Shown here one piece after another: positions 33,173 to 38,654 of a stretch of DNA of 64,000 bases. The stretch's first letter is position 1, and each line of letters opens with the position of its first letter. Origin of the DNA: Paraphysomonas bandaiensis (lineage: Eukaryota > Protista > Chrysophyceae). Under the pieces are notes generated by a model. That model did no database searches and was not told where the DNA came from. It worked only from the letters and a program-made list of their open reading frames with translations. The translations under genes and the position numbers were made by a program. The stretch lies in contig CBFFRP010000035.1 in the NCBI GenBank assembly GCA_965644295.1, forward strand, positions 1-64,000, in the 5' to 3' direction.

Positions 33173-33891
33173 TCAATATAGGTATATCTGTATGTCTGGT
33201 CTCTTGTTTTCTGCCATGCGCTCCAGTTTATCCCTACAGTGGCTTGAGAGTGCTTGGCCCGAGACTGTTACCTTGGTCAGTGCTTTATTTTCCAAGCAGC
33301 GTGTTACGAAATGCTGTAGCAATGGTCAAGGAAATAACTTATGCAAATATTATAAAAAGGTACCGTAATTTGCTTGTCATCCATAGCATTACTAAAAAGT
33401 TCCACTTCGTTAAGACATTGCATGCGTTCTACTGCTTCACCCAGTGATGTCGAGACTTCCTTCAAACTTATGTTTTGAACAGTGAGTTTGACAACCTCCA
33501 TCCCTTGAGAGGATGGCAATACAAGCATATTGAAGAATGGGTTTAATACATCCGACGACAGATTGATTGCCCGTCCTCCTGGACCTGTTTCCTTAGCATC
33601 TAATGTAAGACACTTCACAGGCGGTGTAGAGGGTTGGCGCTCTGACCCAAATGAATCAATGAAAGGCCACAGACCTTCACCGAGAACAACTTCTAATATT
33701 ATATCTACAGGCACACCTACATAAGAATGTTGTACTTTTGAATCGATTCTTTCGGGATGGAAGTTAGGATTCATGGATGGTGGATTCACATGTTGCGATT
33801 CGCTCATCTTTACGTAAACATGATGGCTCTCAACAAACTTCCAACCCGTGGGGGTTTTCTTATCACCACGTTTCGAGAATAGACTCCCCAT
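33173..33891 (-). CDS. Hypothetical protein with N-myristoylation motif and RNI/LRR-like C-terminus
   Basis: MGSLFSKRGDKK start at 33891; probable intron ~33363-33314 extends frame to ..HFVTRCLENKALTKVTV..IQIYLY* (TGA 33173-33175). Confidence 0.6.
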
Positions 33892-34387
33892 GTCTCTGAC
33901 TGTGAGACTGTGAGGACTACACGAGTACGCCAAGGAGTATTGACAATATCAATGTGACTTTATAATTATAGTTATACTCCCCTTCATTGGAGATTGATGT
34001 GAGTGCTCTGGGCTGTTATGTGTGTATGTTATCTACACAATCCCATAGAAATCACCAGCAGCAGCAGTATCTGTAGTCAGGTGTAGTGGTTCAGATTTCC
34101 CGGATTTAGATAGCTAGATATCTAGATATCTATGCATATATTTGAAAATTTAAAGTGTTTTCATGACGAGAATTCACCCCCAGCAGCAGCAGTATGTATC
34201 TATATGTATGGTATATGTACAGCAGGACTATACATACATACGATCCCTGTGTGATGAGAGGAGTCACCTGTGTGCACGTTTGTTGCTCTGTATAAACCGA
34301 GTCGAAGCCACTCCTCTGAGGCTCACTGGCTGTTCATACATCACCACATCACAAAGTTCATATACTTATTCACTCCCTCATATTAGA

Positions 34388-37066
34388 ATGGAAGATAATG
34401 AAGCTCATAGTTCATCAGGGGAGGACTCGGATGACTCAGAGCACATGTATCGTGAAGACATGTCCAAAGAACTCTTCTATGAAAACGCTACAGATACAAG
34501 TGAGAGTGAAGAGCCGAGTGATACAGATCTTATCCCGACCCTTCAAGAGGTGATTGAGGAGTATCTTCATATTAAAACATCTCTTGTCTCTCAGCAGATG
34601 AAGCTGTCTGGGGAGGCGCCCTCGAGAGATGTCATATACGAGGTCAAGTCATCTCTGGCTACTCTTAATGGGGACTTAGAAGATCTTGAGTATGATTTGG
34701 ACGCCCTTTCACTCACCACGAGGGAGGACAAGGCTCAGCGCAAGCATATGGTATCAGATCTGGCTGACTTGTTTGATAGTATATGTGCACTCGACAACCG
34801 GTGTCAGGAGTGTTTGCGAAAGGACGCAGAGAGAAAGCGTGCGCTGGGAAATGATTGCTTTAAAAGTGGTCATTACTCTGATGCAGTAACTCATTATACA
34901 TCGGCCATTGGGTCGGACTCTTCGATACCACTTCTATTTACTAATCGAGCCCTCGCCTTTCAAAAATTAGGTAAATTTGATGAAGCCATCGACGATGCCA
35001 AGACTGCACTCGGACTAGACGTTAACTTTCTCAAAGCTTATGTGATACTGGTTAAGTGTCTGCTGACTGTGGGTAGTGTAGCTATGGCAAGCGAGACCCT
35101 GGATTCTGTTCCTATTGCGTCACAGCAACGCACGGAAGTGGCAGATCTGAAGACGCAAACTGCAGCTGCTGCTAAGGAGTCAGGTAATGCATCTTTCAAG
35201 AAAGGAGAGAAGGAAGAAGCGGTGAAATTCTACACGATAGCTATCCACTGTACTCCGGAGAACCATCTGCTGTATTCCAACCGTAGTGCGGCTTATCAAA
35301 GCCGTGGTATGTGGAAAGAGGCTCTCAAAGATGGAGAGAGGTGTGTGCATTTGTGCGAAAAGTTTCCTAAGGGCTACGTACATATGGGTCGCGCCCAGGT
35401 GCAGCTACAGAGGTGGTCTGATGCGGAAAGTACAGTCAACATGGCCAGTACACTACTTGCCGGTACGCCAGAGTTGGAGAGTATAGCAGAACAGCTGAAT
35501 GAGATTCGAGCCGGGATCCAGGCAGGCAAGCATCATGGTAGGCGCAACAACGGTGGCGGATGGGGATTGTCGGACTCGGAGAAAGCTGAGCAGTTTAAGG
35601 CACGAGGCAACGCCTACTACAAGAGCGAAGACTACGAGGAAGCGGTACGGTTCTACACGCAGGCAATATCCCTCTGTCCTAATGAAGGTCCGTACTACGG
35701 TAATCGAGCGGCTGCATGGCTCATGATGAAAGAATATAAGAGGGCAATTGCTGATTGTCTTGAAGGAATAGCGCGAGAGAAGACGCCAGGATTGCTTGAC
35801 AAGTTACGAATGAGACGGGCGACGGCTCTTGCAGCTATGGGCAGCGTGGACGAAGCGATTTCTGTTCTAGAGGAAGCACTGCGGCTTGAAGGACGACAGA
35901 ACGATACCAAGAATATGGAGCAGCAGTTGGAGCGGCTTAGAGGTGCAGTTCAATCGCTGAACCTTGGTCAAGAAAGTCTGCAGAAAGGGGAGTTCTCAAG
36001 GGCCCGTCGACTTTTTGAGTCAGCACAGAGTGGTGGTCTAAGTGACTCCCCTTCTGTGTCTTTGGGCATAGCTCAGGCATGTCTGGGGGTTGACGAATAT
36101 GAAGAGGCATCCAGGGCTGCGCAGCGTGCCATAGCAGCTGGTGGACAGGTGGGTATTGAAGCGTATGCGGTTCGTGCGGAGGCACTACAGGCAACTGGCT
36201 GTACAGACCTGGCTCAGAAACACTTAATGGCAGCGCTTCAGATGGATCCAGACAACGCCACTTTGCAGAGAAAAATGAAGGCTCTGCGACGGGTCGTAGC
36301 AGAAACCACAAGGGTTCGATCTGCCGTAGATGCAGCGATGAATGCGCGCAAATTTGATGAGGCTGTACGACTGTGTGAAGAAGGTCTGCGCATTGACAGT
36401 CGTGGAAAGAAGCTACTTGCGGAGTTCCATGCCCGTCGTGCTAAAGCGTACTCAATGCAGGCTAAGCAACACTTTCGCCTGGCAGCCGAAGAAAGTGCAG
36501 ATCCAGCTGAGGCGATGCAGGCCTGTTGGCGACGATGTTTGCAGGATTCTCATTATTCTATGTACTACGATTCATCCGATTCTGCACTTCCTGCGGTATT
36601 CCTTAAATGCGAAGCACTACAGGCATTAGGTAGGTATCAGGAGGCGCTGGACGAGCTGGAGAGTTGTTACAAAAACGGTCCTGGAGAAGGAGATGAAAGT
36701 GTGCGAGCAAAGCATAAGGAGGCGCAGTTTTTGCTTAAAAAGTCAAAACGCGTGGACCTGTACAAAGTACTGGGGTGTACCCGCGGTGAACTGTCGTCTG
36801 AGAAAGAGATCAAAGTATGCTACAAGAAGGCAGCCTTGAAATGGCACCCCGATAGACACTCTGGGGCAGATGAGGCGAAGAAGAAGGAGGTAGAGAAGAA
36901 ATTCAAAGAAATAGCTGATGCATATGAGCTTTTAACTGATCCTCAGCGTAAGGCACTGTATGACAAAGGGTATGACAGGGAAGAGATAGAACAGCATATG
37001 GAGATGCAGAACCAGCGAGCACAACAGAGATCTCACTTCCCCGGAAGAGGGCGTTACTATTACTAG
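34388..37066 (+). CDS. TPR + J-domain co-chaperone (DNAJC7-like) with extra TPR clamps and N-terminal BAG-like domain
   Basis: Three K/R..GN..F/Y..Y..AI...NR clamp TPR sets; C-terminal J domain DLYKVLG..IKVCYKKAALKWHPDRH..FKEIADAYELLTDP..R..YD; likely ATG 34388; intronless. Confidence 0.92.
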   Translation: MEDNEAHSSSGEDSDDSEHMYREDMSKELFYENATDTSESEEPSDTDLIPTLQEVIEEYLHIKTSLVSQQMKLSGEAPSRDVIYEVKSSLATLNGDLEDLEYDLDALSLTTREDKAQRKHMVSDLADLFDSICALDNRCQECLRKDAERKRALGNDCFKSGHYSDAVTHYTSAIGSDSSIPLLFTNRALAFQKLGKFDEAIDDAKTALGLDVNFLKAYVILVKCLLTVGSVAMASETLDSVPIASQQRTEVADLKTQTAAAAKESGNASFKKGEKEEAVKFYTIAIHCTPENHLLYSNRSAAYQSRGMWKEALKDGERCVHLCEKFPKGYVHMGRAQVQLQRWSDAESTVNMASTLLAGTPELESIAEQLNEIRAGIQAGKHHGRRNNGGGWGLSDSEKAEQFKARGNAYYKSEDYEEAVRFYTQAISLCPNEGPYYGNRAAAWLMMKEYKRAIADCLEGIAREKTPGLLDKLRMRRATALAAMGSVDEAISVLEEALRLEGRQNDTKNMEQQLERLRGAVQSLNLGQESLQKGEFSRARRLFESAQSGGLSDSPSVSLGIAQACLGVDEYEEASRAAQRAIAAGGQVGIEAYAVRAEALQATGCTDLAQKHLMAALQMDPDNATLQRKMKALRRVVAETTRVRSAVDAAMNARKFDEAVRLCEEGLRIDSRGKKLLAEFHARRAKAYSMQAKQHFRLAAEESADPAEAMQACWRRCLQDSHYSMYYDSSDSALPAVFLKCEALQALGRYQEALDELESCYKNGPGEGDESVRAKHKEAQFLLKKSKRVDLYKVLGCTRGELSSEKEIKVCYKKAALKWHPDRHSGADEAKKKEVEKKFKEIADAYELLTDPQRKALYDKGYDREEIEQHMEMQNQRAQQRSHFPGRGRYYY

Positions 37067-37982
37067 TCTTGATCTACAGCTTTATTACCGTCTTTTAATG
37101 ATTGTTCCGAAATTGACTGGGCTCTTATTACGGATTGTTATTATATATGTTGCCGTGCTATTTATATATTGGGCCAACTGCGTTCAAAGCTCAGGTATTA
37201 TTCGGACTTATTCTCCGAAGAACCTTTGGTCAATTTACTATTTAGCGTACTTCTATTGAACTGAAATAGTCAGAGAATTAGATATGTTTATCCAATTTTG
37301 CATTGCTCTGAGTACTTATGTTTGAGGATTTCTTTGGTATTTGATTATCATTGCTAAATCTCTAGTTGTAAGCATTCCAAAAATATATTGTACTGGTGCT
37401 GCCTTTGTATATTTTCTTTAGTCCATTAAAGGAATAGATCTACACCACCTCTATAAGTTGCTGATAGCAGTAGTTTATTGAATGATAATACTATTCATTC
37501 CTACTACTGAATATATGTCTCAACTTAAATGCAGAAGGAAGAAGGAAGGCCCTGAACAGTTAAGCTGTTCAATTTTTGTATATTGATATTGCATACTTAC
37601 AAGCTTATTTGATTACATAATATTGTCCTGGTAGCTGGTAGTGTTGATATTGGTACCTGGTATTCACAATGTAATTTAAAAGTATCTAACAGTCTAACAG
37701 TCCTCCAACAACCACTGTGACCGTACATGTGGTGACAAATACTTCTAATGTGGCATAAAATAGAATCGTACTATTTTGCCCAATGGGTTAAAAGACGATA
37801 TATATTATTATAACTAATATTTATTTGCGCACACCGGCTAGTGATGTCGTATACAAATTACGGATCATGTGCGAGACTACCTATAATACTACCTCTATCT
37901 TGATGCTGCATTAACCAACACAAATCGCTATTAACGACAACCACATACACAAGTTGTCAAAAATGTTATTAACATAGACTTC

Positions 37983-38654
37983 TTAGGAGAGTAATTTTTG
38001 GCGGATGTCTTTCCTCAGTTCAACGTTTCCTAAACAACATATCTGCACCATGCGCTCTATAGCTGCTGTATCCTGTTTCCCCTCAAGCCACAACTGGGTT
38101 ACTTCTCCTGTTCGAGGAACAGATGCGACCACTAGAAATGAATCACTTGATTTGGCGACGTGCGCTGAAGGAAATTGTAATAACTTTCCACCACGACTCG
38201 CTACAGCAAAGGCGCAGACAATATCTCGCATCTCTATGCCTGCATTCAAAAGAGCCAGCGATGCGCACGTAATAGCAGGGGCTAAATCATTTCCATCAGA
38301 CTGCAGCACCACTATATTAATAGATATAATAGTCTTGGCATATTTCTCTAGATGGACATTACTCTGCAGAGCGTGAGTGATCATACAGGGCTGTATCTTG
38401 CCGGGACACACAGCAGACGATGCGTATCTAACATCGCACTCCAGTTGACCCATTTTACTAAACATTCCCTTCCTCTGTGATGCATGAGGGCCGTGTATGG
38501 AGCACATGACCTTAGCCCCTCCTATCTCCATATAAGACGATCCAGACACTCCGCTAATGAGACCCACATCTACTTTAAGAGGACTCATATCAGGGGATTC
38601 GGAAGACGGAGCGGGTTCATTGATGATACGGGGGTGATAGCTGTCACTAAGCAT
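37983..38654 (-). CDS. Exosome core RNase PH-family subunit (MTR3/EXOSC6-like)
   Basis: GLISGVSGSSYMEIGGAKVMCSIHGP, GQLECDVRYA, VLQSDG, ITCASLALLNAGIEMRD; exact subunit not certain. Confidence 0.85.
   Translation of the reverse strand: MLSDSYHPRIINEPAPSSESPDMSPLKVDVGLISGVSGSSYMEIGGAKVMCSIHGPHASQRKGMFSKMGQLECDVRYASSAVCPGKIQPCMITHALQSNVHLEKYAKTIISINIVVLQSDGNDLAPAITCASLALLNAGIEMRDIVCAFAVASRGGKLLQFPSAHVAKSSDSFLVVASVPRTGEVTQLWLEGKQDTAAIERMVQICCLGNVELRKDIRQKLLS

Follow-up and report, generated by a model that had tools for sequence, protein, structure and literature searches.

Can a single polypeptide hold a nucleotide exchange module, tethers for chaperone tails and a J-domain, and thus most of what is needed to run an Hsp70 cycle? 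This question is raised by an uninterrupted open reading frame (ORF) at 34388-37066 on the forward strand of contig CBFFRP010000035.1 of the marine chrysophyte Paraphysomonas bandaiensis, the first 64,000 nucleotides (nt) of which form the window analysed here. The original prediction, made from the letters of the window alone, described its 892-residue product as a BAG-like domain followed by three TPR clamps and a J-domain. The gene probably encodes a cytosolic, multivalent co-chaperone of Hsp70 (possibly also of Hsp90), composed of a divergent BAG bundle, a pair of Hop-like TPR modules, a TPR block resembling that of DNAJC7, and a J-domain. Its parts are arranged as follows.

34311..37331, + strand: transcript extent according to contigs, intron-free, with a 5' leader of 77 nt and a 3' untranslated region of ~265 nt
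34388..37066, + strand: coding sequence, 892 amino acids (aa) plus stop; ~14 full-length orthologues of 880-1000 aa
34388..34516, + strand: N-terminal acidic tail rich in Ser, Asp and Glu, residues 1-43, of low conservation and differing length (gappy acidic alignment columns 1-107 in all orthologues)
34517..34837, + strand: BAG-like three-helix bundle, residues 44-150, with predicted helices at ~52-72, 80-105 and 112-149
34820..35137, + strand: TPR module A, residues 145-250, closest to Hop TPR2B, four of five clamp residues
35159..35482, + strand: TPR module B, residues 258-365, closest to Hop TPR1, four of five clamp residues
35483..35569, + strand: Gly/Arg-rich linker, residues 366-394, variable across orthologues (alignment columns ~456-540)
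35570..35932, + strand: TPR module C, residues 395-515, opening the DNAJC7-like half, five of five clamp residues by pattern
35933..36727, + strand: further TPR-like helical repeats, residues 516-780, with Pfam TPR_14, TPR_19 and ARM_TT21 matches
36755..36964, + strand: J-domain (PF00226), residues 790-859, with the HPD motif at residues 820-822 (36845-36853)
36965..37063, + strand: C-terminal tail, YDREEIEQ... followed by a Gly/Arg/Tyr-rich end, conserved (alignment columns 1091-1143)

The acidic N-terminus and the helical-looking segment originally placed within 34538-34800 are both present, and the stretch singled out there, LEDLEYDLDALSL...ICALD, comprises residues 97-136. It lies in a domain (residues 44-150) conserved in all full-length orthologues, with the consensus LEDLQYExDxL...KxxRR...IADLSDRC. 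Whether this domain truly belongs to the protein is a question of the gene model, since the BAG-like segment might a priori reside in a separate upstream gene or in an untranslated leader, with translation starting further downstream; moreover, mechanical extension of the ORF reaches an upstream ATG at 34163. Contigs from public runs, including polyA-selected marine metatranscriptomes, were aligned to window positions 33700-37500. A single transcript-like contig of 3,021 nt (run X1) corresponds to 34311-37331 and thereby spans the whole ORF colinearly, with seven differing letters, no gaps and no joints, while contigs from three further runs (X4, X6 and X12) terminate at 37275-37326 and the N-terminal part of the coding sequence (34355-34857) is tiled by pieces from polyA metatranscriptomes. 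Transcript-like contigs from these runs leave 34081-34310 with zero coverage, and the ATG at 34163 was rejected as a start, given that transcript contigs begin at ~34311. Because 34311-34387 contains no ATG, 34388 is the first AUG of the 3,021-nt contig. Contig boundaries cannot prove RNA ends; those of the co-chaperone gene are nonetheless sharp and distinct from those of the contigs of the neighbouring gene, and for this reason argue for expression as an mRNA that lacks introns and takes in the N-terminal domain. In addition, the domain stands in frame ahead of the TPRs in all of the ~30 relatives, among them independent gene calls and coding sequences derived from single-amplified genomes. 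On the strength of the colinear contig and of these orthologues, an artefactual fusion of ORFs was rejected, and an origin of the domain in a misdrawn gene model appears very improbable.

Towards the C-terminus, the J-domain matches PF00226 with an E-value of 7e-19 in the whole protein and of 3e-20 in the isolated C-terminal piece, its PDB matches are the J-domains of DnaJ and Hsp40 proteins, and its H820-P821-D822 motif is invariant in 14 of 14 full-length orthologues; residues 741-861 also resemble DNAJC3 (PDB 2y4t_A). The additional TPRs and the J-domain with an intact HPD motif that had been read in this region are thus borne out by Pfam TPR and DnaJ matches. The three carboxylate-clamp sets fared less uniformly: all three GN...NR[AS] sets are present, but the full five-residue clamp, which in Hop TPR1 consists of K8, N12, N43, K73 and R77, is found in module C only. 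Module A keeps R151, N155, N186 and K216, and in the alignment to Hop TPR2B (KAYVILV against Hop KGYTRKA) Ile220, nearly invariant among orthologues, replaces the fifth Arg. Module B keeps K263, N267, N298 and K328, with His332 at the position of Hop R77 in a gap-free alignment to Hop TPR1 (7kw7_E/1elw_A), and all five of its clamp positions, His332 included, are invariant among orthologues. In module C, the clamp is complete by sequence pattern (K404, N408, N439, K472 and R476) and its residues are invariant or nearly invariant in orthologues, whilst residues 516-780, judged by eye, show no evident clamp signature. The array is therefore best described, as far as its sequence goes, as one complete clamp plus two predicted four-of-five clamps, and not as three full ones.

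Two well-known co-chaperones are close to this array. As in DNAJC7/TPR2, a C-terminal J-domain with HPD is preceded by TPRs that include an EEVD-type carboxylate clamp (module C), and DNAJC7 of animals, fungi and a green alga shares ~29% identity with roughly the C-terminal 52% of the window protein. However, DNAJC7 comprises ~500 aa of TPRs and J-domain only, whereas the window protein, at 892 aa, adds the BAG-like bundle and two Hop-like TPR modules, and appears by eye to have lost the second DNAJC7 clamp. Consistent with the statement that canonical DNAJC7 lacks a BAG domain, the profile of the window domain is absent from animal, fungal and green-algal DNAJC7. With Hop/Sti1 the protein shares the presence of several EEVD-type TPR modules per chain, modules A and B being nearest to Hop TPR2B and TPR1. 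Unlike Hop/Sti1, it has no STI1/DP domains and hence no TPR1-DP1-TPR2A-TPR2B-DP2 order, and its modules A and B replace the fifth clamp residue; Hop, for its part, lacks the J-domain and the BAG-like domain that the window protein carries. In the Pfam scan the 892-aa protein did not match PF17830 (STI1), which is carried by the true Sti1 relatives in the whole-protein search.

What, then, is the N-terminal bundle? An antiparallel three-helix bundle of ~80-110 residues, as expected of a BAG domain, is what the window domain is predicted to form: modelled alone, residues 44-150 are folded by AlphaFold2 (14-sequence alignment) into three helices with a pLDDT (predicted local distance difference test) of 93 and a pTM (predicted template modelling score) of 0.80, the outcome anticipated by the original prediction, and helix 3 (69-106 of the 107-residue model) continues directly into TPR module A. 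When this model was compared with the PDB by Foldseek, AtBAG4 ranked first (E 0.088), followed by many BAG1 chains with TM scores of ~0.72 and root-mean-square deviations (rmsd) of 1.8-2.4 Å, and in the ESM Atlas a BAG1 cluster was found with a TM score of 0.85 amid other bundles. The three-helix BAG bundle is a generic scaffold according to Bracher and Verghese (PMC4753570), and the modelled fold is compatible with a BAG domain, not diagnostic of one. A sharper picture comes from a standalone paralogue in the same genome (on contig C219), whose AlphaFold model has a pLDDT of 95: Foldseek ranks 1-18 out of 350,542 chains are occupied exclusively by BAG1, AtBAG4 and AtBAG1 (E 0.02-0.14), with a TM score of 0.79, an rmsd of 2.6 Å and 19-21% identity to BAG1. 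Syntaxin-6 N-terminal/Habc and spectrin-type bundles were considered as candidates and rejected, for they yield weak Pfam E-values (0.07-0.1) and mid-list structure matches, never come ahead of BAG in the Foldseek ranking and lack the conserved Asp/Arg-Lys signature described below.

At the level of sequence, the affinity emerges from profiles of the family. The profile of the domain, run against PDB sequences, finds BAG1 at E 0.013 among designed coiled coils. An hmmsearch with it through 1.84 billion representatives returned 63 matches at E<=1e-3, and once the multi-stretch coiled-coil proteins among them are treated as noise, a coherent subset is apparent: single, full-length matches in small standalone stramenopile proteins, with library-wide E-values of 1e-8 to 1e-5. 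Examples are the Hondaea fermentalgiana hypothetical protein GBG33564.1 (P0134, E 2.6e-8), an Octactis speculum MMETSP transcript (P0147, 4.4e-6) and P0148 (5.5e-6), and the motif LAxLNGxLExLQ..D.V...ar..RK.L is common to the standalone members. These small proteins carry the same domain family and motif as the window protein, standalone or differently fused, and are nearer to canonical BAG domains than the window copy is. Two proteins, P0135 and P0159, even pass the Pfam BAG threshold (43.6 and 31.4 bits, the gathering score of PF02179 being 23.4 bits), and their matched regions coincide with those found by the profile; hhalign between their repeats and an alignment restricted to DNAJC7-like proteins gives 93.7% probability (E 2e-7) over helices 2-3. 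A second-iteration profile (A4) of 39 sequences, from which P0135 and P0159 were excluded, has as its best natural non-coiled-coil PDB matches BAG1 (E 0.0095), BAG5 (0.01), AtBAG4 (0.036) and BAG4/SODD (0.41), and a profile built of standalone members only retrieves BAG1 first overall in the PDB. Among the Pfam matches (E<=1) of the 39 domain-only sequences, BAG recurs most often, in 12 of 39 and below the threshold (best E 3e-4), with generic coiled-coil families in at most 8. Finally, in a language-model search with P0148 the top match is a BAG cluster (score 0.89, with 197 of 256 features in common), and two more BAG clusters stand lower among the matches listed. Other searches were silent: a word-index search with residues 1-150 found nothing, one with the A4 profile found nine short relatives only, none of them BAG-annotated, and an Atlas feature search with the window N-terminus gave no usable match.

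A number of these results weigh against the assignment. The window domain has no Pfam BAG (PF02179) match even at E<=10, so that the Pfam check suggested at the outset came back negative. CorA, NPHP1 and spectrin bundles score equally well in VIA and Atlas; the best Foldseek E-values (0.02-0.09) stay below conventional significance, as do direct PDB profile E-values to solved BAG domains, which remain at ~0.01 or worse; and no single test of the link to canonical BAG reaches that level. The scores of P0135 and P0159 are sums over two tandem repeats of ~16-22 bits each, and a profile of these repeats (A5) does not reach solved BAG domains, its top match being Pup, for which reasons the two proteins are regarded as supporting but not decisive. 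A six-frame search of the genome for canonical PF02179 found none, a result that is weak evidence of absence because the controls, all of them prokaryotic genomes, gave no match either. In the light of such E-values, of the coiled-coil and designed helical proteins that contaminate every profile search, and of the failure of A5, the resemblance to BAG might be convergent or due to chance, the domain then belonging to a three-helix coiled-coil family that has no relation to BAG and is peculiar to stramenopiles and their allies. This is improbable, however, as five methods (profile-to-PDB comparison, Pfam recurrence, hhalign, Foldseek ranking and language-model features) agree on BAG out of thousands of families, the exclusive occupation of ranks 1-18 by BAG chains for the C219 model is very unlikely to arise by chance, and the invariant Asp and Arg-Lys fall on the BAG signature with the spacing of a fungal BAG domain. 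Hence, although the original identification as BAG gains no match above threshold for the window copy, several independent and individually sub-threshold lines of structure and sequence converge, and placement of the bundle in or next to the BAG family is largely supported. The standalone branch is, in our estimation, very likely a divergent BAG subfamily, and the window domain is likely a further diverged member of it.

The residues through which BAG domains contact Hsp70 bear on what such a domain could still do. HMMER alignment to BAG1 chain 1hx1_B, to which the BAG1 residue numbers are our own assignment, sets D105, invariant over 39 sequences, on D222, and R118, nearly invariant over the same sequences, on R237, with K119 on K238. 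In agreement with what had been read by eye from the window, the Asp and Arg are kept while the Glu and Gln have diverged: an invariant Gly (G95) occupies the position of Glu212, and that of Gln245 is Ala126 in the window and variable across the family, both of which count against the BAG assignment. Glu212, Asp222, Arg237 and Gln245 are the Hsp70-contact residues of human BAG1 (PMC6013550; bioRxiv 10.1101/2020.12.23.424083), so G95, D105 and R118, the positions most strongly conserved in the family, fall on three of the four contact positions, with the canonical residue kept at two of the four. The 13-residue spacing from D105 to R118 equals that from D368 to R381 in Aspergillus nidulans BagA (PMC6013550). 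Since the top conserved positions coincide with contact positions but only two retain the canonical residue, the pattern is in keeping with an interface of BAG type that is conserved but chemically altered, and it also leaves room for a 'mock BAG'. The similarity to established exchange factors (human BAG1 and BAG3-5; AtBAG1-4) accordingly lies in the antiparallel three-helix bundle of ~100 residues, the best structural matches and the retained Asp and Arg-Lys, whereas the window domain differs by falling below the Pfam threshold, by its Gly at the Glu212 position and by having no conserved Gln245 equivalent. It also differs in its placement, being N-terminal and fused through helix 3 to the TPR array, while human BAG domains are C-terminal (PMC4753570).

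As a mock BAG, the bundle would have no exchange activity and would instead mediate dimerisation, act as a scaffold, bind some other partner or cap module A rigidly, leaving the protein an enlarged DNAJC7/Hop-like J-protein. Bag6 provides a precedent for such a domain (cited in PMC4753570), and the two missing hallmark residues, the lack of a Pfam match for the window copy, the continuity of helix 3 with module A and the equal VIA and Atlas scores of generic bundles all lend themselves to this explanation. Nevertheless, G95, D105 and R118 coincide with BAG1 contact positions rather than with the hydrophobic core, as would be expected of a conserved polar BAG-type interface, and the company of a J-domain and an EEVD clamp is a sensible setting for a protein that binds the Hsp70 nucleotide-binding domain (NBD). 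Loss of exchange activity is on these grounds rather unlikely, and the preferred description remains that of a multivalent co-chaperone with a divergent BAG bundle.

The relatives of the gene form a coherent family. The whole-protein search recovers proteins of 880-1000 aa with 38-57% identity over >90% of their length, whose sources include metagenomes, single-cell assemblies of chrysophytes and a brown-alga record; ~30 share the architecture, several being labelled 'DnaJ homolog subfamily C member 7' at source, and an exact-sequence look-up of the 892-aa protein in public gene calls found no record. Among the whole-protein relatives, the domain profile matches P0001-P0033 only and no canonical DNAJC7 or Sti1 relative. 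PF02179 is missing from the precomputed Pfam annotations of every relative, so domain-architecture databases based on Pfam would not show the combination of BAG and J-domain. In a further fusion context, previously unreported, the metagenomic protein P0163 (321 aa) joins a BAG-like domain (residues 15-112) to thioredoxin (PF00085, E 8e-27). The P. bandaiensis genome itself holds at least three further genes with a BAG-like domain (C219, C463 and C224), listed here with an additional profile match and the canonical DNAJC7-type gene.

C219:49288-49584, - strand: standalone BAG-like paralogue in a 328-aa ORF, with an acidic and coiled-coil tail after the domain
C463:63525-63874, + strand: weaker BAG-like copy, apparently intron-split, helices 2 and 3 in different frames/ORFs
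C224:33258-33389, + strand: weaker BAG-like copy, apparently intron-split, helices 2 and 3 in different frames/ORFs
C150:64929-65048, - strand: weaker BAG-like copy, a profile match in the same genome
C366:69357-70987, + strand: canonical DNAJC7-type gene, intron-containing, TPR plus J-domain with two GN...NRA clamp-type modules and no BAG-like domain

For the C219 paralogue, the sole Pfam match is BAG (E 0.022, 15.7 bits, below the gathering score); ~100 nt downstream of its ORF lies a long perfect microsatellite, ~0.8 kb of a 12-nt unit that translates as (IHTY)n or (YVCM)n. Because a separate canonical DNAJC7-type gene exists on C366, the window gene probably represents an expanded paralogous lineage and not the DNAJC7 orthologue. 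Within the window, the downstream neighbour (37983-38654, - strand) codes for a member of the RNase PH family (PF01138, E 7e-21) that is probably a subunit of the exosome and is unrelated to the co-chaperone, and the upstream neighbour (33304-33933, - strand) is a 209-aa ORF with no Pfam match; transcript-like contigs running from 33700 to ~33987 end there, leaving a short untranscribed gap ahead of the co-chaperone gene.

Potential partners of the clamps are encoded in the same genome. Four cytosolic-type Hsp70s end in GPKIEEID (contigs C426, C264 twice and C290, the C264 pair in tandem), the usual ending of cytosolic Hsp70 being IEEVD, and a BiP ending in DDEL, two Hsp90s ending in MEEVD and a Grp94-like protein ending in HDEF are found as well. 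J-domains stimulate ATP hydrolysis by Hsp70, BAG domains act through lobe IIB to open the NBD and so cause release of ADP, clamp TPRs bind EEVD-type tails, and DNAJC7 presumably passes clients back from Hsp90 to Hsp70. From these established functions of the J-domain, BAG and clamp-TPR families a mechanism can be proposed, in which one or more clamp TPRs would tether the four cytosolic Hsp70s by their IEEID tail or the two Hsp90s by their MEEVD tail, the J-domain with its intact HPD would trigger ATP hydrolysis and client capture, and the BAG-like domain might then promote the exchange of nucleotide and the release of the client, whether on a single Hsp70 or between two chaperones. The protein could thereby drive the Hsp70 cycle in both its halves on one tethered chaperone, or it could pass a client from one chaperone to another, as presumed for DNAJC7. 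Binding of Hsp70 and nucleotide exchange by the BAG-like domain, binding of tails by the four-of-five clamps and action in cis are all putative, and the absence of the fifth basic residue from two of the three modules (A and B) is a point against this explanation. That the protein is a self-contained driver of the Hsp70 cycle, in which EEVD clamps, a J-domain and a BAG-type module capable of nucleotide exchange act in cis on one Hsp70 or in a client relay, is offered as a tentative and somewhat doubtful extension of the more general co-chaperone function.

As the original prediction supposed, this architecture does not figure among characterised proteins in the accessible literature, where we found no description of a natural fusion of BAG and J-domain nor of stramenopile BAG proteins; a large survey of J-protein architectures leaves BAG unmentioned in its main text. 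Pending biochemical confirmation, both the combination of a BAG-like domain, TPR clamps and a J-domain and a hitherto unrecognised divergent BAG subfamily would be new.

As a rule, J-domain proteins are distinct from nucleotide exchange factors, and the ratio of the two tunes holding, folding and release by Hsp70. If both activities are real, a conserved natural fusion equipped with EEVD tethers would offer a system for studying the coupling of hydrolysis and exchange in cis and would inform engineered chaperone scaffolds. Should the protein indeed drive the cycle by itself, processive capture and release of clients would follow, together with a new class of J-domain proteins and a BAG subfamily, invisible to Pfam, that would provide stramenopiles and their allies with their BAG-type exchange factor. 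The divergent BAG-like family occurs standalone, fused to TPRs and, in one case, fused to thioredoxin, and its proteins are currently filed as 'DNAJC7' or 'hypothetical'. Because current Pfam thresholds miss this family, Hsp70 exchange factors are probably under-annotated in the genomes of stramenopiles and related protists.

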